Source: Gracilinanus agilis
Taxonomy: Eukaryota
Length of the DNA: 63,820 nt
Reading direction: 5' to 3'
NCBI RefSeq assembly: GCF_016433145.1
Contig: NC_058131.1
Location: 634,523,308 to 634,587,127 of the forward strand
Below the pieces are notes generated by a model. The model had not been told where the DNA came from, did no database searches, and saw nothing but the letters and a program-made list of their open reading frames with translations. Position 1 is the stretch's first letter, and the number at the start of each line of letters is the position of its first letter. This document shows positions 7,331 through 58,749 of the stretch, piece after piece. The translations under genes and the position numbers were made by a program.

Positions 7331-7901
7331 CAAATAAAATCTATTCAATATTAGGAATTTGGTTCTTGCATTGAATCTAGGATCCTTTTATGCATGTACC
7401 CTATGACCCTGATTTTATAAAGATTCTGGGTTCTCATAGAAAGGATTAGGTGGATTACTAAAGGACAGGTTCTTTCTGGGGAAATAAGTCAATGGAAAGA
7501 AAATTGTCTCAAGAACGAATTCTGCCTTTGATGTTTAATACCTATACAATTCCGAGTAAGTTATTTACTCTTCTTTGGCTCCAATTTTCTCATTGGTAAA
7601 ATAAGCAGATTAGATGACGTCTAAGGTCCCTTTCAGTACTAGATCTATAATTGTATGATCTACCTGGGGTTTAATCTGGAACATTTCCAAATATTCTTAT
7701 GACTTTACTTTTCATACATATGGGCATCAGGGTCAGTGGAACGTTTATAAGCACTCTTGGTAATAAAATGGAGAGAATGGGGGACCACATGACACGTGTG
7801 TTTTTGTGGATATTTCTTTCTTGTATGAATTGGACTAGAAAGCTGTCAAGATTCCTCCCAGCTCGCAAATTCTGTGGTTCTGTGATTCTGTGGAAGTCTT
7901 T

Positions 7902-8087
7902 TTTTTTTTAAACCCTTGTACTTCAGTGTATTGTCTCATAGGTGGAAGATTGGTAAGGGTGGGCAATGGGGGTCAAGTGACTTGCCCAGGGTCACACAGC
8001 TGGGAAGTGGCTGAGGCCGGGTTTGAACCTAGGACCTCCTGTCTTTACTAGGCCTGACTCTCACTCCACTGAGCTACCCAGCTGTCC
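7902..8087 (-). mobile_element. Young opossum SINE (SINE1_Mdo-like) with perfect 15-bp TSD
   Basis: TSD TCTGTGGAAGTCTTT at 7887-7901 and 8088-8102; poly-T tail at left; A-box/B-box-like head on minus strand. Confidence 0.92.
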
Positions 8088-10968: not shown

Positions 10969-13587
10969 TTGGGTTTTGTTTTGTTTTTCACATCTAACTA
11001 ATTTAGATTTTTAATTACTCTGGATTAATGTTACATTTCAGGGTTTGCATGCCCTGAGGAAGTCAATAGGAAGTCTTGATTGCTTCTGGTAGTAGCCTAC
11101 TTAATACATGTACCCTCCTTCATTTTCTTGGTAGTCATCTTTCTGGCCTCTAAAATAACATTCATAGGAACTTTGCTTATGGTTGCAGAACCACTCATTG
11201 TTCTCTATCAAGCTACCAATTTTTCTGCCAGCTGTAAAGCCAGATTCTGCTGGGCTGTGGGCTCAGTGCTGTGCATTACCATTATCTGTGTTGGCTGATC
11301 CAGAGAGGCCATGAGCTCCTCATTGATGATTTTGGAATGAATTTTGCTGATTATGGAGTGAACAATGGGCAGATCCAGCTGGAACATATGTGACAATATT
11401 TCCATGCTAATACAGTCATAAACACTGCTATCGGTAAAAAGAGAGGCATATAATGTCTTTTCTAAGCTCTTTATAAGTAAGTATGGTATGGACTTTGTTA
11501 GCCTCAGGGAACAAATCTCACACTTTCCCATTGGTCTTCTCATTGATAGTAAAGTTGGGACAAATCTTCCAGACACCTATCTTCATGGCTTAAGAAGCTG
11601 CTACTACACATTCCTTCACTGACTTAGGTGGACCAAACAAGGGCTACAGCTCTCCCAATCTCAGTTAGTGGTGGAACTGTTTGCTGATCATGTAAATCTA
11701 GGTATCACTTTTCAGAAGCTGCCATGTATGAGATCTCCAGGAGCATGACAGATTGGATACAAAATAGGTAATTTAAGCAACTCTAGGTTGATATGCAAAT
11801 GATAGGGCATCTGGCATTGATGCTCCACCTTCTCCTGCTTCTGGTCCCATTCCTGCAGGTTCCTGAGCAGTAGACCTTGATCCAGCAGCCCTTTAGCATG
11901 GTCACTGGATTGAATATTCAGGAAGGCATTGTGTGCATTCTTTATTAGGTCCTAGAAAAAGGAAGAGAGGTCTACATGTACCATGCTACAGTTATAAGGC
12001 ATCTGCATGTTGAATGTTGTCCTCATGAATGTGAGGTCCTGAGCCTGGGACTATTTGGCCTGGTAGTACTTGTGGCAGAAGATTTCACATATCTCAATTC
12101 AGTCTCTCTAATTCTTCTATGCATGCTTTTTCTTTCAGCATAACTGAATCCTGCCCCTCATTTTCAGCCTGATCTTACTATGACTCTAAGAAACCTTCAG
12201 AGTAAGGAAGCTGTTTCTCCTAAGCCTTAAAGCCAAATTTGTTGTAGGTATGGAGTCAATTATGAAGGTAGAGATGTCAGATCTCCTTGGTTTTTCCTTT
12301 TCTCTACAAGTAGCACTGAACACACTCAATGATGGCACAGACACAGACCTCATCCTTGAGATGCTCTACATATGAGGATCTGTTTTCTGAATGATCTTGA
12401 AAAAAGATCCTTTCCACCAATGAGGATAAAACCACGAACATGAAAAAGAGCTCGAAGTTAGATAGATTCTTACAATCTTCCAGGATATTCTCTCCTGGAA
12501 TTCTCTCCAACAAAGATTTGGGGGTTTGCAAACAACATGTCCATCAATTTATAGATGTAGTCTAAGCACTCTTGCCAGAACTCTGGCTTCAAATACGTTG
12601 CCATGTTGGGGCTGCTGAGAGAGAGAACAATGATAGTGAATTTGATCTTAACAATCACTCTTTCCCTTAGATTGTTTTCTGTTGTGATCTGAACCAGCAG
12701 TTAAAGCCACTTAATTTTAGGCTACATGATCATTTCCTTTCTTGCTATAAGCTTGCAGGGTCTCATTACTACAATTGCATGGGTAATCTCTGTTTCATTG
12801 GCAAACATTTTAGGCTTCTCTATGACCCATGGTGCTATTCCTCATATCCATACCTTCTCCCACTTCTGGCCTTCTTTATCCTCCTCCTCAGTCTACGTGC
12901 TTGCATTTTTGGTCATGCTTTTTCTTGGATTGGTAATCTCACTTCTCTCTAGCCTTTTTGTCTGTGATGCTCTCTCTACTTTTTTTAAAGGAATTTGGAA
13001 GCCAAGAAGGCATATTTCTTGTCATACTCCTGAGAGAGAGTCTGAAGAAGTGGATTTTGGATCTCAGTCTTCATCATTTATGTCTCCTCAGAGTTCTCTG
13101 TGTCTTTGAGGAATTGGCAACTTTTCCTCAATGTCTTCAGGAAATTTATGATCCTTAAGTCCATCTTCATCCTCAACTGAAAGGAAAAACTTTCTGAGAA
13201 CTCCTTGTTTTCCTTAGTGTCCTCACCAGCTGATTGCCTAGGGTTATGCTCATAGTTGGTGATCTGGACTTCATAATCCTAATAATATTTATGGATCTTC
13301 TGACAGTTAGTGGATTCTGAATTTTCACAGCATACCATATATAGTCCAGATAAGATGGATCAGCTCCTCAAACATTTTGTCCTTTGCACTTTGAAAAACC
13401 TGTTTAGGGTCTTTCTCATCTTCACTCAACAGCAATGGCTGTTTGCCACAGTTGCCTCCTACAGACTTAGGCACCAGCTCCTCCCCCAATAGGGAAGACT
13501 CTGACTAGCTATTAGACCTAGTGATGAAAAACTGCTACATGGCATGGGCAGTGAGGAGACATGGGCCAGCTCAGGAGAACTAGTTTT
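10969..13587 (-). pseudogene. EIF3C: Processed pseudogene (retrocopy) of eIF3 subunit C; CDS remnant 13540 (ATG) to 11063 (TGA), with short 5'UTR, 3'UTR, ATTAAA and decayed poly(A)
   Basis: Minus strand reads [42 protein letters not shown] (EIF3[45 protein letters not shown]); [24 protein letters not shown]; YVEHLKDEVCVCAIIECVQCYL; [37 protein letters not shown]; ends ..TSY*. No introns, many stops and frameshifts, ATTAAA at 11010-11015, (AAAC)-like tail near 10963-10988, degenerate TSD tgtgttgttgt (10959-10969) / tgtgttatttt (13588-13598). Confidence 0.96.
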
Positions 13588-32425: not shown

Positions 32426-33876
32426 GTATGATAAACCCAAAGAGCCCAACTTTTGGGACAAAAATCCACTATTTGACAAAAACTGTTGGAAAAATTGGAA
32501 AACAATATGGAAGAGATTAGGTTTAGATCAACATCTCACACCCTACACCAAGATAAATTCAGAATGGGTGAATGACTTGAATATAAAGAAGGAAACTATA
32601 AGAAAATTAGGTGAACATAGAATAGTATACCTGTCAGATCTCTGGGAAAGGGAAATTTTTAAAACCAGGCAAGAGTTAGAAAAAATTGCAAAATGTAAAA
32701 TAAATAAATAATAATAATAAATTTTGATTATATTAAATTAAAAAGGTTTTGTACAAAGAAATCAATGCAACCAAAATCAGAAGGGAAACAACAAACTGGG
32801 AAAGAAATCTTTATAACAAAAAATTCTGACAGAGGTCTAATTACTCAAATATACAAGGAGCTAAATCAATTGTATAAAAAATCAAGCCATTCCCCAATTG
32901 ATAAATGGGGAAGGGACATGAATAGGCAATTTTCAGATAAAGAAATCAAAACTATCAATAAGCACGTGAGAAAGTGTTCTAAATCTCTAATAATTAGAGA
33001 AATGCAAATCAAAACAACTTTGAGGTGCCACCTCACACGTAGCAGATTGGTTAAAATGATAGAAGGGGAGAGAAATGAATGTTGGAGGGGATGTGGCAAA
33101 ATTGGGACATTAATGCATTGTTGGTGGAGTTGTGAATTGATCCACCCATTCTGGATGGCAATTTGGAACTATGCCCAAAGAGCTCTAAAAGACTGCCTGC
33201 CCTTCGATCAAGCTATAGCATTGCTGGGTTTGTACCCTAAAGAGATCATAGATAAACAGACTTGTACAAAATTATTTATAGCCGTGCTTTTTGTGGTGGC
33301 AAAAAAAATGGAAAACAAGGGTATGCCCTTCAATTGGGGAATGGCTGAACAAATTGTTGTATATGCTGGTGATGGAATACTATTGTGCTCAAAGGAATAA
33401 TAAACTGGAGGAATTCCATGTGAACTGGAAAGAACTCCAGGAATTGATGCAGAGGGAAAGGAGGAGAGCCAGAAGAACACTGTACACAGAGACTGATATA
33501 CTGTGGTAAAATCGAATGTAATGGACTACTTCTGTACTGACAGCAAAGCAATGACTCAGGACAATTCTGAGGGATTTATGGGAAAGAATGCTACCCACAT
33601 TCAGAGGAAGAACTGCAGGAGTGGAAACACAGAAGAAAACAACCGCTTGAACACATGGGTTGATGTAGACATGGTTGGGGATGTAGACTTGAAACAACCA
33701 CACCAATGCAACTATCAATAATATGTAAATAAGTCTTGATTGATCACACATGTTAAAACCAGTGGAAATGTGTGTTGGATATGGGGGTGGTGGTGAAGGG
33801 GAAAGTAAAAACAAGAATCACGTAACCATGGAAAATTTTTTCTAAAAATGTAAAATATTTAAATAAAAAAAGTAAA
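32426..33876 (+). mobile_element. Relatively young 5'-truncated L1 (about 1.45 kb) with perfect 15-bp TSD; ORF2 C-terminus frameshifted
   Basis: TSD TAAATGCCTACTATG at 32411-32425 and 33877-33891; ORF 32765-33400 carries the L1 CCHC motif CWRGCGKIGTLMHCWWSC; a slip in the A-run near 33301-33309 moves WKTRVCPSIGEWLNKL..MEYYCA into another frame; inserted into an L2 tail. Confidence 0.95.
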
Positions 33877-40633: not shown

Positions 40634-40815
40634 TTTTCAAATTTACTTTCTGTATTAGAATCAGTACCAAGTATTGGTTTCAAGGCAGAAGCTCAGTAAG
40701 AGCTAGGCAACTGGGGTTAAACGATTTGCCCAGGGTCACACAGCAAGGAAGTGTCTGAGGCTAGATTTGAACTGAGGACCTTCCTTCTCTATCCACTGAG
40801 CCATCTAGCTTCCCC
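40634..40815 (-). mobile_element. Opossum CORE-SINE
   Basis: gtattggtttcaaggcagaag...gcccagggtcacacagcaaggaagtgtctgagg...ccactgagccatctagcttcccc. Confidence 0.85.
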
Positions 40816-44077: not shown

Positions 44078-44277
44078 TTTTTAAAAACCCCTACCTTCCG
44101 TCTTGGAGTCAATACTGCATATTGGTTCCAAGGCAGAAGAGTGGTAAGGCCTAGGCAATGGGGAACAAGTGATTTGCCCAGGGTCACACAGCTAGGAAGT
44201 GTCTGAGCCCAGATTTGAACCTAGGACCTCCTGTCTCCAGGCCTGGCTCTCACTCCATTGAGCCACCCAGCTACCCC
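44078..44277 (-). mobile_element. Opossum CORE-SINE preceded by an AT-rich decayed tail (about 44025-44080)
   Basis: aaacccctaccttccgtcttggagtcaatactg...ccattgagccacccagctacccc. Confidence 0.9.
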
Positions 44278-45791: not shown

Positions 45792-45992
45792 TTTTTTTCT
45801 TAACCCTTACCTTCTATCATAGAATCAACACTATGCATTGGTTCCAAGGCAGAAGAGTGGTAAGGGGTAGGTGATGGGAGTTAAGTGACTTGCCCAGGGT
45901 CAACCAGCTAGGAAGTGTCCTGAGATCACACTTGAACCCAGGACCTCCCATCTCTGGACCTGGCTCTCAATCCACTGAGCTACCCAGCTGCC
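45792..45992 (-). mobile_element. Opossum CORE-SINE nested in L2
   Basis: taacccttaccttctatcatagaatc...ccactgagctacccagctgcc. Confidence 0.88.
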
Positions 45993-47597: not shown

Positions 47598-47804
47598 TTT
47601 AAACCTTTGAAAAAAAAGGCCCTTACCTTCAGTTATTCAGAATTAACCCTGTGTCAGTTCTAAGGAAGAAGAGTGGAAAAGACGAGGGGGTTAAGTGACT
47701 TGCCCAGTGTCACACAGTCAGAAAGTGTCTGAGACCATATTTGAACCCAGATCTTCCCAATTCAAGTCCTTGTCCTCTCATCCACTGAGTCACCTAGCTG
47801 TCCT
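47598..47804 (-). mobile_element. Opossum CORE-SINE with 14-bp TSD
   Basis: TSD TGAAATGTCATCTT at 47584-47597 and 47805-47818. Confidence 0.87.
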
Positions 47805-48329
47805 TGAAATGTCATCTTACCAGCTTTGGGCAACAGTTGGCAGCAATGCACCTCCAGGGGACACAGAAGACAAGCTGATATTTAATTCTCTGTCCTCCTA
47901 GCCCTTATCTCTCTCTTTTTTTTTCTAGTTTGGAACAGTGATTCCTACATGGTTTGTTCCAAATGAGCTGGCCAGGAAAAAAATAATCGAATTCTATCTT
48001 ATTTATAGAAATAAACATGTGTCCTCTACTTTTAGGGTCATGTTCTTTTTTTTTCTGGAAACCCATTTGTTGAATTTGTATGTCTATAGAATGAACTAAA
48101 AATTCCCTCAGAGTCTGAGTACTTGCTGTTCCTCAATAAATATCTCTTTCCTTCTCTCTAGACCAAAAAAAGTCTTTTTATTCGGTCCATTGATTTTAAA
48201 TATTCCTTATAAAAGAGAGTGAGTCCTAGTCTTTAACATTGCTGGAACTTAAATACCAAGAGAAGGTCAAGAAAAATGTCACTTGGTTCTTAGAATTATT
48301 TTGGCCAAAGTAAGGAAAGATCAGAAAAG

Positions 48330-48690
48330 GGGAATGGGAGATCTCTTCTTTCAGAAAGACTGAGATCTTCAAGATTTTTTATTCCAGACATATGAGACAT
48401 ATACCCAGGATACAGATAATCCAGAATAACACCGTTTCACCTTTTTGAGGAGAATTCACTTGTCTTTTGATATTTTCAGATTGATATTTACTATAACCAA
48501 GTTCTAACATTCTCAGAATTTGATCTGGATTCAAAGAGATGCAATGGCATTCATCTGTATCCTTTCACCTCTGGTGTTGAACTCTTCTTTGTAGATTTGC
48601 TACAACTGGATGGCTTTTGTCACCTCTTTCAATTTGTCCTTCTTCCTTTCTCAGTACCAGCAAACCTCCTCCATCTCCAAGGCACAGTTT
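48330..48690 (-). mobile_element. RTE-clade LINE ORF remnant
   Basis: Minus strand KEVTKAIQL*QIYKEEFNTRGERI and later PQKGE..IC..KIL resemble RTE pre-RT motifs (QIYxEE..GG; LLPKKGD..NYRPICLL). Confidence 0.45.
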
Positions 48691-48999
48691 TGTTATAATT
48701 GGCTGAAAGCCCAATCTGTATGGCCTTCTTTCCCTCCCTTTCCCCCCTTTCTTGTGTTGGGCCCCTCACCTTGGCTTTCTCTGGAAGAAAGTCTAAGTGG
48801 ATATTTTCTTCAGGCTGTTTTAATCAAATTTCTGTTATCTTTATCCTCTCTAGCCCTTCCACTTCTCTCCCACCACCATCCCCTTCCGGCCAGCCCCTAA
48901 AATACCTCCTACTCTAAATCCCAAATAGGGGCTTTAGGGACAAAAATGACTGCTGATTGCCCCTTTTTTCTGTAATGACATGTGATGATCTCAGGTTAG

Positions 49000-49520
49000 A
49001 CATGCAATTCTCCAATCTGGAAAATGAAAGGGAGGGAGGCACCATACTGTGAAATCATTGTGCAAAATATATTTTTTTTGAGAAGGCCTCATAGCCCCTT
49101 TTTCCATGGTGTCATACCTGACCCCATTTCACACTGGAAAAATAAAAATTAAAACTCGAAGGAAAATTCCATTATATCGCAGGTGAGCTGCTGGGGAAAA
49201 TGACCAGTCTTACCAAAGTCACTAAACATGACCATTTAATAATTTTATTTTACTTGCTTATAATTTTTAATTGGCGTCACTGGCGGATTGTTTATTTCCA
49301 ATAATTTGGGAGGAAAAAGCCATGCTCTCATCCTAGCTGTGGACTTGTTTGCCAAGTTTCAAACCAGAGCAGATTTTACTGCTGACTATAACCCCCTGAA
49401 AGAAGGCTTATAAGGCGCTGCTGACAGAAACTTTACAATCGTAGTACCATTGACGCCATTATAATTAGCAGTGCCCCCACCCCCACCCCCCCACCTCCAC
49501 AGCCCTCCCTCCCAAGGACT
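49000..49520. promoter_or_regulatory. Candidate conserved non-coding element / enhancer
   Basis: No recognisable repeat; 7 CpGs in 49141-49470 in a CpG-poor genome; several TAAT/ATTA cores, two half-CRE sites (CGTCA 49275, TGACG 49451), FOX-like TGTTTAT 49289. Confidence 0.5.
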
Positions 49521-50724
49521 GACTTTGCAGGGTAAGATTTGAATCTTTCTCTATGCACGAGAATGTCACAGAGCTGGAGCAAAAACATTACTTAGGGTGA
49601 GTCATAGACCAGCATTAGGTTTTAAAGACTAATGCAGATCCAATAAATCTAACCCACATTCTTTCTCTGGGAATGACTGACTTTTATGAAAAAACCAAGG
49701 GTTGTAAATCAGAAACCTAAATAAGATACTTTTCAACAGATAAACATCAATTTATTCGTTGCCTGAGCCCAAGGTTAACCATTTCGTGGTGCCATAGACA
49801 CCAGGGGGAAGGGTTATTCAGATGAACTACTACAATTTTCCCAGAAGGGCATCAGGAGAGAGAAAGGAGCCAGAAAGACAGTGACATGCAAGGATGATTC
49901 TTAGGGATTATTTTTCTCCCCTTGAATTTTTGGGCTTAATTTTCTAACATGGCCCCATGGACTCAATTGCAATTTAGCCCTTGAATGTGCATTCTCTTAA
50001 GATGCAGGGAGGAATAGAGGAGAGAGTCCTGCACACAGATATGTAGGCAAGTCATGAGAACTTGGGTTCCATTCGTTCCAGGTTAACCCTCCTGGAGCCT
50101 CAGCATCCTCATCTGTGAGATGGGGATCTCTTCGTATTGTTGCAAGCCTCAAATGAGATAACGTCCACAAAGTGCTCTATCAGTGTCATTTATTATTATT
50201 ATAACCTTAAAATCTTTCCAGAGAATGTGAATGTATCCATGCCTGGAATGTTTTCCCTCTTGCCCTCCTCCTGTCTCTTAACTCCTTTCAAGGCTCTGCT
50301 TAAGTGCCTTTTCTAATCCCCTGCTCTTCTGTCTGTTAGCCTCCCCCTTCCCCATCACTTTGTATTTATTGTGTATTTTACTCTGTAATGACTTAAACTC
50401 TGTACATGTTGCTCCCCACCAGTATTGTGTCAGTTCCCTGAAGACAGGGATTATTTTCACTTTTGTTTTTGCATTCCTAAACTTAGAAACACCTAGGAGA
50501 CACCTTCCAGTGCTTATTGAATTGAGTCAAATTCATTCCCATCACCCAAACTCTTTATTCCTGGGACTCTTTTTTTTTTTTTAATTCAAATATAGACATG
50601 CTGAACTATATTCCCAAACCCTAGCAGAGTGACTTCAGGCAAATGATTCCCTCTAGGCGAGCCTCAGTTTCCCTTTGTGTAAAGTGGGAATAATAACAAT
50701 AGCTTCCTTGCCTACTTCTCAGGA

Positions 50725-50920
50725 CAGTTAATTCCCAAAGTGGGTACCACCACCCCCTGGTGGGTGCTGCAGCGATCCAGGGAGGTGGTGATGGCCACAG
50801 GTGCATTTATCTTTCCTATTAATTGCTATTAAAATTAAAAAAAATAATAATTTCCAGGGGGCTAAGTAATATTTTTTTCTGGAAAGGGGGCGGTAGGCCA
50901 AAAAAGTTTGGGAACCACTG
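50725..50920 (+). mobile_element. hAT-superfamily MITE, copy 1 (inserted in a MIR)
   Basis: Ends cagttaattcccaaag...gtttgggaaccactg; near-identical to copies 2 and 3; TSD degenerate. Confidence 0.9.
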
Positions 50921-51299
50921 CTTAAGATGAAATGGAATCCAGCAATTTGCTTTTATAAATTTAGAAGCCGGTTCAAGCTGTGGGGATGGGGATGCATGTG
51001 AGTGAAATAAGGACTCGATAATCCTCATAAGGCCACTTCCAAAGCTAACATTTGAGGGGATAGTCATTCTTTGCATCCTTAACAAAACGCAAGCTTTCCC
51101 ATGTGAGCAGGAGTCCGTTTGATCAATTCAATCTTTGGCCCCAGTTCCATTTGCCTCTTCTTTTCATGGCATCCTCCGCCTCTGTATTGTAACTCACACC
51201 ACTATCTTGTACAATGCACACTCCCTGAAACCCTCCAGCCTCCTTATCTTAACAGAGTCCAGGCTCAGCTTCTCCCAGCAGCCAGATTACTTAACCTTA

Positions 51300-51950
51300 T
51301 CTGCCTTACACTTCTATATTTAAACAAGGGGAGCTCTTTGTTGAGACTTCATATAAAAAAAAATGACTGCAGCAGATTTCGGACTTTTAGAGAAAGGGTA
51401 TCTATCACTTTTATGTGGCATTTCAAAGGGGGAGGCATTTACTCAGCCAAGAGACAAAGGCGGGCATCCGTGTTAATGAAGGACTGCTGATTTAATAATT
51501 AACTTTTAATACTAAACCAGCTCCAAGGGTAAGAAGCAATTAGATCGAGCCACTGTTAAGTGACTCACTCTGGATTTGGCAAGAGGTGAAAAAGGGAAAG
51601 AGACTGATTTTGAATGTGGACTATTGTTGGGAACCCACCAGGGCTTCCCGGGGCTTTTCTAGAGTGCCAAAGTCCTGGCAGGCAAGAGTTAACACCACGT
51701 GCAAGGAGAATGGAAGGGTCTCCAGTGGAATCCTTTGTGGGGAGAGAAAGTAGGACACGGAGCAGTTATCCCTTGCAAAATCTTGGATGGGGAAGGCTGC
51801 TTGGCAAGCACAATGATTCACACCGGCTGTTTTCCTCCTGCAGATAGCACACCTGTCTTTCTATGCCTGTCTTCGAGGCTTCCTCCCCTACGCAGCCGGT
51901 CCCCATTACCCTCAGCCGGGCATCCTCTGACCTCTCAGCAGAGCTTTGTA
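51300..51950. promoter_or_regulatory. Candidate enhancer (HNF1, TCF/LEF, SOX-like and E-box motifs)
   Basis: TTTAATAATTAAC 51491-51503 (12/13 to HNF1 GTTAATNATTAAC), TTCAAAG 51422-51428, CTTTGTT 51336-51342, CACGTG near 51696, 8 CpGs in 51640-51920. Confidence 0.45.
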
Positions 51951-52014
51951 ATTCCTCTCTTAAACATTTGCCCTCACTAGATCTCGAGCTGGAAGGGACC
52001 TCCCACAATATATG

Positions 52015-52220
52015 TTGCTCTTGTTGTTCAGTTTATCTGACTCTTTGGGGTTTTCTTGGCAAAGCTAACCAAGGTGGTTTGCTGTTTCCTTCTCTAGCTC
52101 ATTTGGCAGTTGAGGAAACAAAGGCAAATAGAGTTAAGTGACTTGTCCAGTAAGCACTGGAAGCTGAATTTGATTTCAGATCTTTCTGACTCCAGGTCCA
52201 CTGAGCCAACTAGCTGCCAC
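52015..52220 (-). mobile_element. Mar1-like CORE-SINE nested in a MIR
   Basis: ttgttgttcag...ttggggttttcttggcaaag...ccactgagccaactagctgcc. Confidence 0.8.
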
Positions 52221-52944
52221 ATTTTGTAGTTAAGTAAAATGAGGCTCAGATAGATTAAGCCCAATGTTCACACAGCCTGCAAATGGGAATTCTGCTCCAA
52301 CGTGGGGGTATGATGGTAAATGTCTACAACTGACTCTCTGGGAGGAGGAGGGGGAAATGTATTCAGGACACACTTTAAAATTTAATCTGCATTATTAACT
52401 TGTTCTCCATCACTTTCTTATGACTAGACAGCCAACAAAACAATAAGTTAAGCTCTAATTTGTAGCCTTTGCTAATTTCTGAGGCATAAGTGCTCACACT
52501 GAAAATTTAACAATTGGCTCTCTCTGCTTTTAATAATAGAATCTATCTAGTTCTTTAAGGCATGTTGTCTCATTTGATCCTTATAACAACTCTAAGCTGT
52601 AGGTAATATTATTATCCTCACTTTACAGATGGGGAAACTGAGTCTGAAAAAGTAAAATGACTTACTCAGGGACACAGAGCTAGTAAGCATCTTAAGCAGG
52701 AAATTTAGGTATTCTTGACTATATTGCATAATACTTCTGCCAGAGGATTTAATAAATTCACACTAAGATTATAAGTAAGTTTTAAAATATTGCTCCTCTA
52801 AAAGATATTTACAGGGTTTTTGTGGTGTGAGGGGGTGAAAGAAGGTAGGTAGGAAGATTGGATGGAATGGGAGAAAGGAGAGAGGAAGGTAGAGGAAGGG
52901 AAAGGAAGGTATTGGGCTCCCAGCCTGGACAGAATAGTCAACAG

Positions 52945-53137
52945 CAGTTGTTGCCAAACATTTTTGGCCTACCTCCCCCTTTCCAGAAAAAATATTACTT
53001 ACCCCCCCCTGGAAATTATTCTTTTAAATTTTAATAGCAATTAATAGGAAAGATAAATGCACCTGTGGCCATCACCACTTCCCTAGATCACTGCAGCACC
53101 CACCAGGGGGCGGTAGCGCCCACTTTGGGAATCACTA
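52945..53137 (-). mobile_element. hAT-superfamily MITE, copy 2, with perfect 8-bp TSD
   Basis: TSD GTCAACAG at 52937-52944 and 53138-53145 (8-bp TSD is diagnostic of hAT); imperfect TIRs cagttgttgccaaac / tttgggaatcacta. Confidence 0.95.
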
Positions 53138-53514
53138 GTCAACAGGCACAGGTCTCAAATGACACAGCGGGGTAGTGTATGTTCAATAGTAACGAAGGAA
53201 TGAAAAATCCCAATTGTGGGATTTTAGACAGAAAAACTGGATGGAAAAGGATCTAGAACGTAAGTCTCTGGCTCTCATCATACCGTTTTTTTTAGGGTGA
53301 AGGAGAGGAGATTTTGGACCTCTGTTTTCATCCAGTCATAAAAGATGCCTCAGCAGTAGCTTAGTCTTAGTTGCTAGGATTATTAAGAAGTAAAATGAGT
53401 TGTCCATGAGAAGAGTAACGTGGTACATGAACTTGAACCCAAGCCTTGCTGACTCCTAGGTGAGCTTGCTCATGTACTGTGCCATGCTAATTGGCACCTT
53501 ACTTAATAATGAGA

Positions 53515-53752
53515 GGGGCAGCTGGTGGATAGAATGGATAGTGAATAGAGTGATGGATCTGAAGAGAGGAAGACTTCTCTTCCTGAGTTCAAATCTGGCA
53601 GCAGACATTTATTAGCTGTGTGACCCTAGGCAAGTCACTTAACCCTGTCTGCCTCATTTCCTCATCCGTAAAATAAACTGGAGAAGAAGATATTGAACCA
53701 TTTTAATATCTTTGCCAAGAAAACCCCAAAGAAAACAACTGAACGATAATAA
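53515..53752 (+). mobile_element. Mar1-like CORE-SINE
   Basis: gagttcaaatctggcagcagac...gtgaccctaggcaagtcacttaaccctg...tttgccaagaaaacccc. Confidence 0.85.
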
Positions 53753-55149
53753 TTAGAAATCTTAGATTGGGGTTTGAAAACTGGCTCCCCTAGTTACTTT
53801 TTGTGTGAACTCTGAAGAAGTCACTCTTTACGACTTAGTTTCTTGATCTATAAAAAGAGGAGATTGTCCTTGTTTTGTGACCTGGCAGGTCATGCTCAGA
53901 TCTCAGCCTATGACCTGTGACTAGATGGTACGATCTGTAAGACATCGTCCAGTACTAAATGCTAATGTTGCCTTTTATAATGCTTTCGATTTGAGGATCA
54001 GGAAAAAAAAAAAGAACTTTTGCACAATTCTTAAAAGATCTGGGCTAGTCTACCCAGCTGCCTTTATTGAACCCATTACCACTTTGGCCTCACTTTCGAC
54101 AATGGGAAATAAGCAAAGGGAAAGAATGTTAGATTTGGAGATGAAAGACGGGGTCCATTGCTTCTTTGCTACTTGTTACCTGTATGACCCTGGGCAAGAC
54201 ACTTGGGTCTTTGTTTCCTCATGTGTAAAATGAGGGCATTGGACTAGATGGCCTCAATGGTCCCTTTGAACTCGAAATCTCTCTCCTCCCAAGTGCCTTC
54301 GCTGGCCATTCAGGGAGATTAGGGGTCTGACAAAGATAGGCAGAATGAATTTGCTTTCTTTTGGGTGACTGACTATCCTGGAAGCCTACCTAGCTTTCCC
54401 TTAAGAATGGACCTCCAAGCTTTCATTCTCACCTCTCTGAGGGGAGCGGAACTCAAGGGAACCAAGCTAGAAGTCCCCAATTCTTCAGCCTCAGGTGTAA
54501 TCTGGGCCAGGTGCCCAGGTGGAGGGGGACATTTGATGGAAGGAGAGGAAGCACTGAGCTTTTGTATCCCTGAATAAGTGGCCTTTCTCTTAACACAGTA
54601 GCACATCTCTACAGGGAACGACCCACAGGAGCCAATATTATCGAATATCTTTAAGGCACGCTGGATCAGGGTGCATTCCTAGGTAGCAAGAGGTAGAAAA
54701 ATAGTTAATATTTGACTGAAACCCTGGGCCACTTCAGTGCTCTCAGCAAAGAGCCTTGCCATATTTCTGCTCTCTCCACTCCCCTCTCCCCCTCCCCAAG
54801 TGGAACTAATAACCTCCCTGGGGTTCCCTAGTTAGCTTTCCACACAATAGCAAAGGAAACTTTAAAGAGGACAGTGTAGAGGCAGGGGGCTAGAAGCAGG
54901 AAATCTTTAGGCAAAATGAAAGAGTGGTTAAGATGAAATTGAAAGGAATGAATTCTCCAGGGGTAGATGAAGTGCAGAAAAAAATTCAAGCTTCCCTCCT
55001 TGGGCCTCAGTTTCCTCTTCTCTAAAATCTCAGGGCTGGGTTAAGTGATCTCTAAAGTCCCTTCCAATCCTAACAAACAGCCTGCAATTTAAGTCCTTTG
55101 TAGTTTCTCTCAGGTCCCTCCCAGCTCAGAATCTGATTCACTCTGTCTG

Positions 55150-55950
55150 GCCAGGTTCAGCCACAACCTTATCAGCCTTAAGTGTTGATCTTCCCTCCCT
55201 TCCGAAGGAAAATGATTAACAAATCTTAAAAGACAGTTGCCCGTTACCTTGTTAGTTTTTTAGATAATGCTTTTTTAAAAACATATACCATTTTACAAAA
55301 TCAATTTTTCCTTCAGGATGAGAGAGGCTATTTACTCACTGGGGGGCTTTTCTTGCTCTTGGTCTTTGAAAAAGACTCAGAGAAATCCTCCCCCAGGGAG
55401 GAGAGAAGAAAGAAAAAAAAAATCTGACATTGAAAAAATCAACTCCTGGCTTAGTTTTTGCCACAATTCTGTGACTTTTATTTTTTATGACTGTCGATTA
55501 AAACTCACTTTATTCTTTGGGAAAAAGAAAAGAATCCTATTTGTCAAATTGCATTCCATGTCAGGCATTCTTAAATGAGAACAAACAGAATACCTTTGGT
55601 TTCATCAACTCAAGGGCAATTATGTTTTGGTTTGGGATTTCAGGCATATAATGCATCATAAGCCTCAACTTTATGTTCATTTTCATGTGAAATTAATTAT
55701 AGAAGAAATTGGAAATTGCAAAGTTTTTTTAAAGCAAAAACTCCAAAAGCCTACAACTAGAGAATGCATGAGAAAGCCATTTGAAATTTTAAAGTGCTAA
55801 AAAATGGATAAGGCCATTATTCAATTTGAAATGATTATTAAATGAAAAAGCATGATTCGAGCCCTCCCTCTGCCCCTCGCTGTTCAGCCATACTCTGATG
55901 CTCGGAAAATCTGTATTTCTTTGCCAGTTTTATTGGAAAGACAAATTCAA
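55150..55950. promoter_or_regulatory. Candidate enhancer (TEAD, HNF1-like and CDX/posterior HOX motifs)
   Basis: No recognisable repeat; CATTCC 55552, CATTCT 55566, AGAATG 55761; GAAAATGATTAAC 55208-55220; TTTTATGAC 55483-55491. Confidence 0.4.
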
Positions 55951-56329
55951 GATTAGTAGACAAAGGCAAATGCACTCTCAAGACAACAAGGTCTCAACTT
56001 TTCTTCCTGGGGTCTGAAAGAAGGGAGTTTCTAGCCAACTTTGGGTTCTATTCATGTGGTATGCATAGGCATATCAGACTTAGTTTACTTTACTTGGGTC
56101 TGAAATCTTTGCCAGTGAAAGAACTGGGGTGTTGTTGAAGCAAAATCTGGTACATTGAAACAAATTCTCTTTTGGTTAAGGCATCAGGGCTTAGCTTCTA
56201 CTTAAAGTAGGATAGGGCTAATTATCTAGGTTGACCCCACCTCCCTTACACTCATAAGCTTTCTTTAACATTTATGGCCTTCTTTTTACAACTCATCATT
56301 AAATTTCAAACAAGAACATTAGCATTTTT

Positions 56330-56770
56330 CTCTACTCCAATCCACCCTGCAAGTTGCCAAAAGAAATCTTCCAAAAACCTTTGATCAAGTCTCCTTACTC
56401 AAAAGCCTTCAGTGGCTCACTGCTACCTATGAGCAGCGAATGTCTGACAGTTCAGGGAACAAGTTAATGCCCTCCACATCCTGGTTGACTGCTTATCCTC
56501 TTTATCACCCCAATACTTCCTTTCACTCCCTTCCCAGGTGATCCATTGACTCTTCTCCAAACACACTTTGTTCACTCCTACCTCCCTGTCTTTGTTCATT
56601 AACCTTCTCCTCCCCATCCCTCAGTCTACCACTTATCTCAAACTTACTCATCCTTGAGACCTGCCTCTCTGAACCTGGCCCCTCCAGCCTATTGTTCTTG
56701 GCACTAAGTTTAATGTTCATAGGACTCATTTGACAATTAATCACATCCTGCCTAGAGGCACCTTTTGTGC
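56330..56770 (+). mobile_element. L2 3' fragment
   Basis: ccttactcaaaagccttcagtggctcactgctacc; cttactcatccttgagacctgcc. Confidence 0.7.
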
Positions 56771-57608
56771 TGTGATCTCTATGGTTATTGTCAGGTTTAT
56801 CTAGAGCTGTGTTGAAAACAGTATCATTCTGGCTCTTTAGATTTGGCTAGCATGTAGATGTCCCTTGCTAGTTGCAGATAACCCTTAAGAAGCCTCGACT
56901 TGCTTTTCTCTAATTCTGTGCTCACTGCACAACCTTCTGGCTATAATTTAGTCTCCTGAGCAGACTCATTTACTAAAAGAGTAGGTACCCTGGTTCAATT
57001 CCCACTGCCAATGAGCAAATTGGCATTCATGTTAAGACAGAATCTTACTCTTATGAATTTCATTAGTATGAATAAGTTTCTCCAAACCTGGTTACTACTG
57101 AAGAACTAACAAAATTTGGTTTCTAAACCTACAAAGCTGAGGACCAGATCATGGACTCTATCAAGTTAAGCAGAACTTTGTGGGGTTCATAGACTTAGAA
57201 TGGGAGAGGATTTTATGAGTCTTCTGGTACAACTCTCTCATTTTATAGATGAGAAGACTGAGACCCAAAGAAATTGAGTAACTGGTCCAAAGTCAAACAG
57301 AATTCATAACAAACTAGACCTACTGTAACTTTCCACTGAACCACAATTACTCCCTTAAAATTGCAATCAAACTCTCTTTTGATGTTAACAAATCTTTGAG
57401 ACCACTTGCAATAATCATTCAAAGAACATTCAATCATAATGAGTAGATAATAGTCTTCATGAGAGTGGGAATCTTACCACATCTAAATTTCTTGCCTGGG
57501 AAATAAAAGATACTCTGTACCCCAAAGGTCCTTAATAAATGCTTGTTGAATGTATATATTTTTTTCTTTTTTTAACATAATGTTTATTTTTCCAATTAGG
57601 CCGTAAAC

Positions 57609-57801
57609 CAATGAGTCCCAAAGTGGGCACCACCGCCCCCTGGTGGGTGCTACAGTGATCCAGGGAGGTGGTGATGGCTACAGGTGCATTTATTTTTCCT
57701 ATTAATTGCTATTAAAATGTAAAAAAATTAATTTCCAAGGGACTAAGTAATATTTTTTTCTGGAAAAGGGGTGGTAGGCCAAAAAAGTTTGGGAACCACT
57801 G
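57609..57801 (+). mobile_element. hAT-superfamily MITE, copy 3
   Basis: Ends caatgagtcccaaag...gtttgggaaccactg; 8-bp TSD CCGTAAAC / TCATAAAC (6/8 match, central TA). Confidence 0.93.
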
Positions 57802-58749
57802 TCATAAACTATCTAAGGGAAGGGAAAATGTATTATAAAACTCTGAAGCCCTGCCCCTCACCCCCAAGGCCTTATGCACAGTAGGTGTTTGATTTGCTGT
57901 TAGATAATTAATTTCAGTCATTATGTGTGTGGCCAAACATTTTAAAAACTATTGAGATAGCCTCAAAAATTCTGGTTTTAGTTATTTGCTTTTGCTGTAA
58001 AAAGGAGACATATAAAAATATTTCAACCACATTTAAGTTTTAATGAAACCACATAGAGAGGAGAAGCTCTATTCTGTATCTTAAATATATTTCCAAAACA
58101 TGAGCTGAAATTCAACAAAAGGTAAATGCTCTAATTTCTGTGCATTTACAAGCTCCTTACATAAAATTCATGGAGTCATATTTATCCTTCCAAGCCTCTT
58201 GGATTAGGACTCTGTTTTCTCAATTTTCTGTTGACTCGTTTAATATGCAGTCAGGTTCTTCCCCCTTCCTCACTGCCCCAAGTATATCAAGTCATTCTAA
58301 GGTCATTCTCTCTCTAGGGTAGGAGCATTTAAAAATAAGTGGTAATGGAAAACTCTAGGAAGGTCTGGGGCGTTGGGAGCAGAACAGTGTGCCTAGAGAA
58401 GCCTAGGATAAGACTTGACCCCAGCGTTCTGGGTTAAATCAATATGGGGAGGTTGAAGGTCTTATATAGAGAGTCTATATTCTCTCATCTTCTGTAGGGG
58501 CAGCAGGTGCTGCTATCTATTGTCTACTGTTGCTAGGGCTGAATGTCAGTCCCTGTTGCCTAGAGATGAAGTTTTCCTCTACATCCCGACTGCAAGGCCC
58601 CAAGCAAAAACGAAATCCTCTGTCCAAACCAGCCACACTGTCTCCATTTGCTTTCTTCTAGGCAGGTCCATCTGTTGTTGTAGGTGGCCAGGTGGTATAA
58701 ACTTATTTGAAACACAGTCACTGGTTCCATAAATATACCCACTCATCAA

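Follow-up and report, generated by a model that had tools for sequence, protein, structure and literature searches.

Three hAT-type MITE copies in a Gracilinanus agilis window carry a CTCF motif near one end

A 63,820-base stretch of the Gracilinanus agilis genome (contig NC_058131.1, assembly GCF_016433145.1, positions 634,523,308 to 634,587,127 of the forward strand; the whole of this stretch is called the window here) contains three copies of a short miniature inverted-repeat transposable element, or MITE, that belongs to the hAT superfamily, and each copy has, close to one end and in a fixed direction, a strong match to the binding motif of CTCF. Overall, this is probably best explained by independent insertions of one hAT MITE with a built-in, oriented CTCF motif. 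An initial annotation made from the letters of this DNA had described the same elements and motifs, and had read them as insulator sites seeded around enhancer-like blocks. The observation is confirmed by our analysis, while the interpretation of the MITEs is partly supported.

Three full-length copies of a non-autonomous hAT element

We built a profile from the three MITE copies and searched the window with nhmmer, which returned exactly three full-length elements of 193-196 bp, with E-values from 4e-66 to 5e-71, and no MITE fragments anywhere in the 63.8 kb. Copy 1, a hAT-type element of 196 bp, lies on the minus strand at 50725-50920 (E=5e-71, with sequence reading and alignment in agreement); copy 2, of 193 bp, lies on the plus strand at 52945-53137 (E=4e-66, and alignment); and copy 3, also of 193 bp, lies on the minus strand at 57609-57801 (E=2.5e-68, and alignment). 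Pairwise differences among the copies amount to 9-13%, or Kimura two-parameter (K2P) distances of 0.09-0.15.

Copy 2 is flanked by a perfect target-site duplication, GTCAACAG, found at 52937-52944 and again at 53138-53145 (8/8 positions identical). The duplication around copy 3 reads CCGTAAAC on one side (57601-57608) and TCATAAAC on the other (57802-57809) and agrees at 6/8 positions, both mismatches being transitions and one of them CpG decay. That of copy 1 is decayed to 5/8, with the register shifted by one base. The termini of all copies consist of CAGTGGTTCCCAAA at one end and a CAGTGATTCCCAAA-type sequence at the other, giving inverted ends of the form CAGTG...CCCAAA with the CAG (YARNG) start that is characteristic of hAT elements. 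The two ends of each copy, taken as the opening 48 bases and the reverse complement of the closing 48, align over about 37 bp as an imperfect inverted repeat, laid out as CAGTGRTTCCCAAA, a spacer of about 10 bases and then ACCGCCCCCT; the ACCGCCCCCT segment is common to both termini of every copy. None of the open reading frames (ORFs) of at least 90 aa in the window overlaps a MITE copy. Because of the 8-bp duplication, the CAG-type ends, the size of about 194 bp and the lack of coding capacity, we assign the element to the hAT superfamily as a non-autonomous MITE.

No autonomous partner with a hAT transposase is present within the window, and an Rfam scan gave no match on the MITEs. We also considered the element as a hairpin or small-RNA source and rejected this, as its fold z-score is only -1.8 and it has no long stem. 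Copy 1 adjoins the tail of a MIR-like short interspersed nuclear element (SINE) at 50600-50724 (...CTCAGTTTCCCTTTGTGTAAAGTGGGAATAATAA...), so that the flank on the motif side of this copy is itself repetitive.

A near-consensus CTCF core at one end of each copy

The intact 14-mer CCACCAGGGGGCGG occurs at 53100-53113 on the plus strand in copy 2 and at 57633-57646 on the minus strand in copy 3, and a form with one mismatch, CCACCAGGGGGTGG, occurs at 50750-50763 on the minus strand in copy 1. No further match with two or fewer mismatches exists in the 63,820 bases, in which 0.07 would be expected by chance. The sites were scored with a hand-entered CTCF weight matrix of the JASPAR MA0139.1 counts, whose column sums of 908-913 look right. 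By this matrix the three MITE sites rank 1-3 among all matches on both strands of the window (p 2e-9 to 7e-8). The intact cores of copy 2 (53097-53115, plus strand) and copy 3 (57631-57649, minus strand) score 24.7 and 24.9 bits, and the core of copy 1 (50748-50766, minus strand) scores 20.7 bits, all three being located by matrix and by pattern; the maximum possible score is 31.2 bits, and the best site outside the MITEs in the window reaches 16.9 bits. In a check that makes no use of the matrix and allows up to one mismatch, the degenerate consensus CCASYAGRKGGCRSY matched only the three MITE sites, where 0.14 matches were expected.

The difference in copy 1 is a C-to-T change at the motif CpG that costs about 4 bits, by which the copy 1 site is weakened and not destroyed. 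In each copy the core sits about 25-40 bp from the 3' end. As the motif occupies the same position of the element in 3/3 copies, with the CpG transition as the sole difference, it is a consensus feature of the MITE family and not a private mutation.

Both ends of each copy have words of the AGGGGGCGGT type, inverted relative to one another, in agreement with the GGGGGCG subterminal repeats noted at the outset. Only at the 3' end is this G-rich half (AGGGGGCGGT) preceded by CCACC, which makes a near-consensus CTCF core; the opposite end of the MITE scores at most 6.5 bits against the matrix. Since the G-rich half of the core lies inside the inverted repeat, it is part of the end region of the element, presumably the part to which the transposase binds. 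The description in the initial annotation of three MITEs of about 195 bp, each with a subterminal CTCF core that is intact in copies 2 and 3 and CpG-decayed in copy 1, is thus upheld by the profile search, the 14-mer search and the matrix, down to the coordinates and the C-to-T change.

After the MITE sites, the strongest CTCF-like matches of the window have 15-17 bits and are at 47848, 48874 and 49795. They fall within 47827-49813, a short way upstream of the MITE cluster and in the same relatively CpG-rich neighbourhood.

Origin and clustering of the copies

The three copies are separate insertions, because their flanks differ and each has its own 8-bp duplication. Their position within 7 kb of one another might favor a local segmental duplication, and not transposition, as the source of the three copies, but the copies cease to resemble each other precisely where the inverted ends finish, the sequences beyond are unrelated, every copy has an 8-bp duplication of its own, and one of the three has the opposite orientation to the remaining pair. 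This origin is refuted by the comparison of the flanks, and we give it next to no probability.

We propose instead that a single non-autonomous hAT MITE inserted here three times independently, and that each insertion brought with it one strong CTCF motif, the direction of the motif being set by the direction of insertion. The cluster spans 7077 bp, and the remaining 56.7 kb have no copy. Three points placed uniformly would fall so close together with P=0.034, a mildly unusual degree of clustering. Local re-insertion is a known habit of hAT elements, and the tight cluster may have come from it or from a tendency to enter accessible, relatively CpG-rich DNA; no selection for an insulator arrangement would be needed to explain it. 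On the basis of the pairwise K2P distances and a neutral rate for marsupials of 3.21e-9 per site and year (PMC3621081), the insertions may very roughly be dated to 15-23 million years (Myr) ago.

Relation to known repeat-borne CTCF sites

Many deeply conserved eutherian CTCF sites lie inside the hAT MITEs MER20, MER20B, MER91B and MER91C (Table S3, PMC3368268), and MER20 and MER91B are enriched at loop anchors (Choudhary et al. 2023, PMC9902604). In Arctic lamprey, the CTCF peaks obtained by chromatin immunoprecipitation sequencing (ChIP-seq) show a strong enrichment of hAT-Tip100 and hAT-Charlie repeats, with odds ratios of 18-50 (PMC5504073). Carriage of CTCF sites by hAT elements is thus an established principle in eutherians and lamprey. 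A search of the literature found no description of this marsupial MITE family as a carrier of CTCF sites, and the family is a new instance of a spread of CTCF motifs by hAT MITEs that is already documented. The initial annotation had suggested that a DNA-transposon MITE may be a separate, lineage-specific source of insulator sites: the strong, oriented core in the family consensus supports the family as a source of CTCF motifs, but the idea of a DNA transposon in this role is not new, given MER20, MER91B and the lamprey elements.

The MITE resembles the eutherian hAT-Charlie and hAT-Tip100 elements MER20, MER20B and MER91B in being a short non-autonomous hAT element that contains a CTCF site. 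Those, however, are ancient eutherian families with support from ChIP and Hi-C, whereas the marsupial MITE is younger, as its differences of 9-13% indicate, and is known by its sequence. With MAR1_Mdo of opossum, B2 of rodents and SINEC_Cf of dog it shares the expansion of a lineage-specific repeat in which a CTCF M1 motif has a fixed orientation (Schmidt et al. 2012, PMC3368268). Those three are copy-and-paste retrotransposons, whereas the MITE, as a DNA transposon, moves by cut-and-paste and has its motif within the inverted end. The lamprey hAT-Tip100 and hAT-Charlie repeats are, like the MITE, repeats of the hAT class linked with CTCF (PMC5504073), but they represent another vertebrate lineage and other families, and are tied to CTCF by ChIP where the marsupial MITE is tied to it by its motif.

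If many copies of the MITE are bound, the family would give a marsupial, beside the MAR1_Mdo SINE, a further way of expanding its CTCF sites that runs through a DNA transposon. Its intact and CpG-decayed sites would then form a natural series in which the birth, methylation and loss of CTCF sites could be followed. As it stands, the window holds three transposon relics with a strong motif, a further example of the principle established in eutherians and lamprey.

CTCF binding and constraint

In mammals, a substantial share of motifs so close to the CTCF consensus is usually occupied, and occupancy of the MITE copies by CTCF is plausible. We predict, at close to an even chance, that copies 2 and 3, in which the motif is intact, would be able to bind CTCF in vivo in one tissue or more.

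Several points weigh against binding. Four ancestral CpGs can be inferred from the three copies, and the motif CpG is kept in 2/3 copies and the other three CpGs at 3/9 copy-sites. With the few copies at hand, three in all, the retention of the motif CpG is no different from that of the other CpGs, and these sequences give no sign of protection or constraint. The weight matrix was entered by hand, and for these copies the case for binding is built from sequence. In opossum liver, ChIP-seq of CTCF and STAG1 identified lineage-specific motif words that often lie within MAR1_Mdo SINEs, in hundreds, and the study mentions no hAT element (PMC3368268). Its word test required a more than 7-fold excess over other species (PMC3368268), and because the near-consensus word of the MITE might fall short of this threshold, the silence of the study is compatible with binding of the MITE.

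Alternatively, the motif may be an inert by-product of the transposase-binding end, carried by copies that, as is usual for transposon relics, are methylated and held in closed chromatin, and that are free of CTCF. The G-rich half of the motif does belong to the inverted end at both termini, and the window, with a G+C content of 37%, is strongly depleted in CpG (observed/expected 0.10), which implies heavy germline methylation. The decay of the motif CpG in 1/3 copies, its retention at no better a rate than other CpGs, and the fact that no hAT family was flagged in the opossum ChIP study (PMC3368268) are also what inert copies would give. On the other side stand the in vivo binding of the hAT MITEs MER20 and MER91B and of the lamprey hAT repeats, and the occupancy generally seen at near-consensus motifs. 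We regard inert copies as a serious contender, at somewhat below an even chance.

Orientation of the motifs and the neighbouring blocks

The CTCF motifs of copies 1 and 2 are divergent and those of copies 2 and 3 are convergent. The initial annotation gave these orientations correctly. A strong form of its reading would make the copies oriented insulators or loop anchors bracketing two enhancers, with a boundary set by copies 1 and 2 about a block at 51.3-51.9 kb and a convergent loop between copies 2 and 3 enclosing a block at 55.2-55.9 kb. The strength of the motifs and the orientations themselves are in keeping with this, as is the CpG density at 51.4-52.0 kb, the highest in the window. However, a convergent neighbouring pair arises in 4/8 of the orientation patterns of three randomly oriented elements, so that nothing can be learned from which pairs diverge and which converge. 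Cohesin loops are usually far larger than 2-4.5 kb, as the initial annotation itself conceded, and at such spacing the locus is unlikely to serve as an insulator or loop anchor. The 55.2-55.9 kb block, moreover, is AT-rich and has neither CpG enrichment nor any other distinguishing feature. We consider insulation or looping around two enhancers very unlikely here, as it has no support beyond a coincidence of position.

The two blocks fared differently as candidate enhancers. Between copies 1 and 2, and outside the MITEs, a unique block at 51401-52000 (no strand assigned) is the 600 bp with the densest CpG of the window: 12 CpG against 2.1 expected, with a Poisson probability of 1.8e-6 before correction for about 630 intervals. 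It lies within 49-54.7 kb, the CpG-richest part of the window. Because of this highest CpG density there is some support for the 51.4-52.0 kb block as a candidate regulatory element, and it is by CpG density that the enhancer-like label can be kept for it; the 55.2-55.9 kb block is unremarkable. An Rfam scan gave no match on either block. An Rfam match to SMAD5-AS1_2 at 49465-49590 was rejected as C-rich low complexity, having 17 bits against a threshold of 50.

Family identity and a lead toward horizontal transfer

The 14-bp inverted end of the MITE, CAGTGRTTCCCAAA, is identical to that given for hAT-HT3_AC of Anolis, a Charlie-like family spread by lateral transfer (Table 1, PMC3014272); the comparison covers the 14-bp end only, and relatedness to hAT-HT3 and horizontal transfer may be taken as a lead only. 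In size the MITE resembles the 192-bp OC1 MITE of the Tasmanian devil (PMC3621081). OC1 (OposCharlie1) was rejected as the source family: the OC1_Das-NA consensus starts with CAGGGGTCCTCAAACT, and compared by eye it has no evident similarity to the MITE beyond a generic Charlie-type end (PMC3621081 supplement). SPIN was rejected as well, its end CAGYGGTTCTCAACCT not matching that of the MITE (PMC3014272). The end sequence of the MITE was not found in the literature searched, and exact patterns of a 46-mer and a 26-mer from its core had 0 matches in metagenome, viral and prokaryote contig collections.

Public sequencing runs were searched with 17 sampled 31-mers from 53090-53230, which covers the end of copy 2 and its unique flank. 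The single run with most of these words contained 0.77 of the 17 sampled, and 23 runs from 13 other organisms each contained 2-3/17. The runs with a small share could reflect a MITE end that is nearly unchanged in other species, whether these are relatives or share it through horizontal transfer.

A broader scenario, which we offer as speculation and consider improbable, is that a burst of a Charlie-like hAT MITE, possibly of horizontal origin, gave the opossum lineage thousands of new CTCF sites of near-consensus sequence within roughly the last 15-25 Myr. A sizeable fraction of these sites would be occupied, and would have been overlooked in the 2012 ChIP study as the motif word is near the universal consensus; local hopping would have left small clusters of alternating orientation beside accessible regulatory DNA.

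Other features of the window

Many SINE copies of the MIR/MAR type are present in both orientations, at 7900-8045, 40644-40789, 44092-44237, 45808-45953, 47686-47757 and other positions, and were sorted as repeat families D1-D6 and D10 of the window. Together with the G+C content of 37% and the CpG ratio of 0.10, this wealth of SINEs gives the window a marsupial look. None of the copies in the window has a strong CTCF match, though this class of repeat is reported to carry opossum-specific CTCF sites.

Among the ORFs of at least 90 aa in the window there are no convincing exons. The C-terminal part of a 122-aa ORF at 11208-11576 on the minus strand has the appearance of what we take to be a translation-initiation-factor-3 subunit C type protein, and the ORF is probably a fragment of a processed pseudogene; it contains a PCI domain (Pfam PF01399, E=5e-6). 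A second ORF, of 211 aa at 32765-33400 on the plus strand, has no Pfam match. By its appearance, we take this ORF to resemble a LINE-1 ORF2 protein in its C-terminal part.

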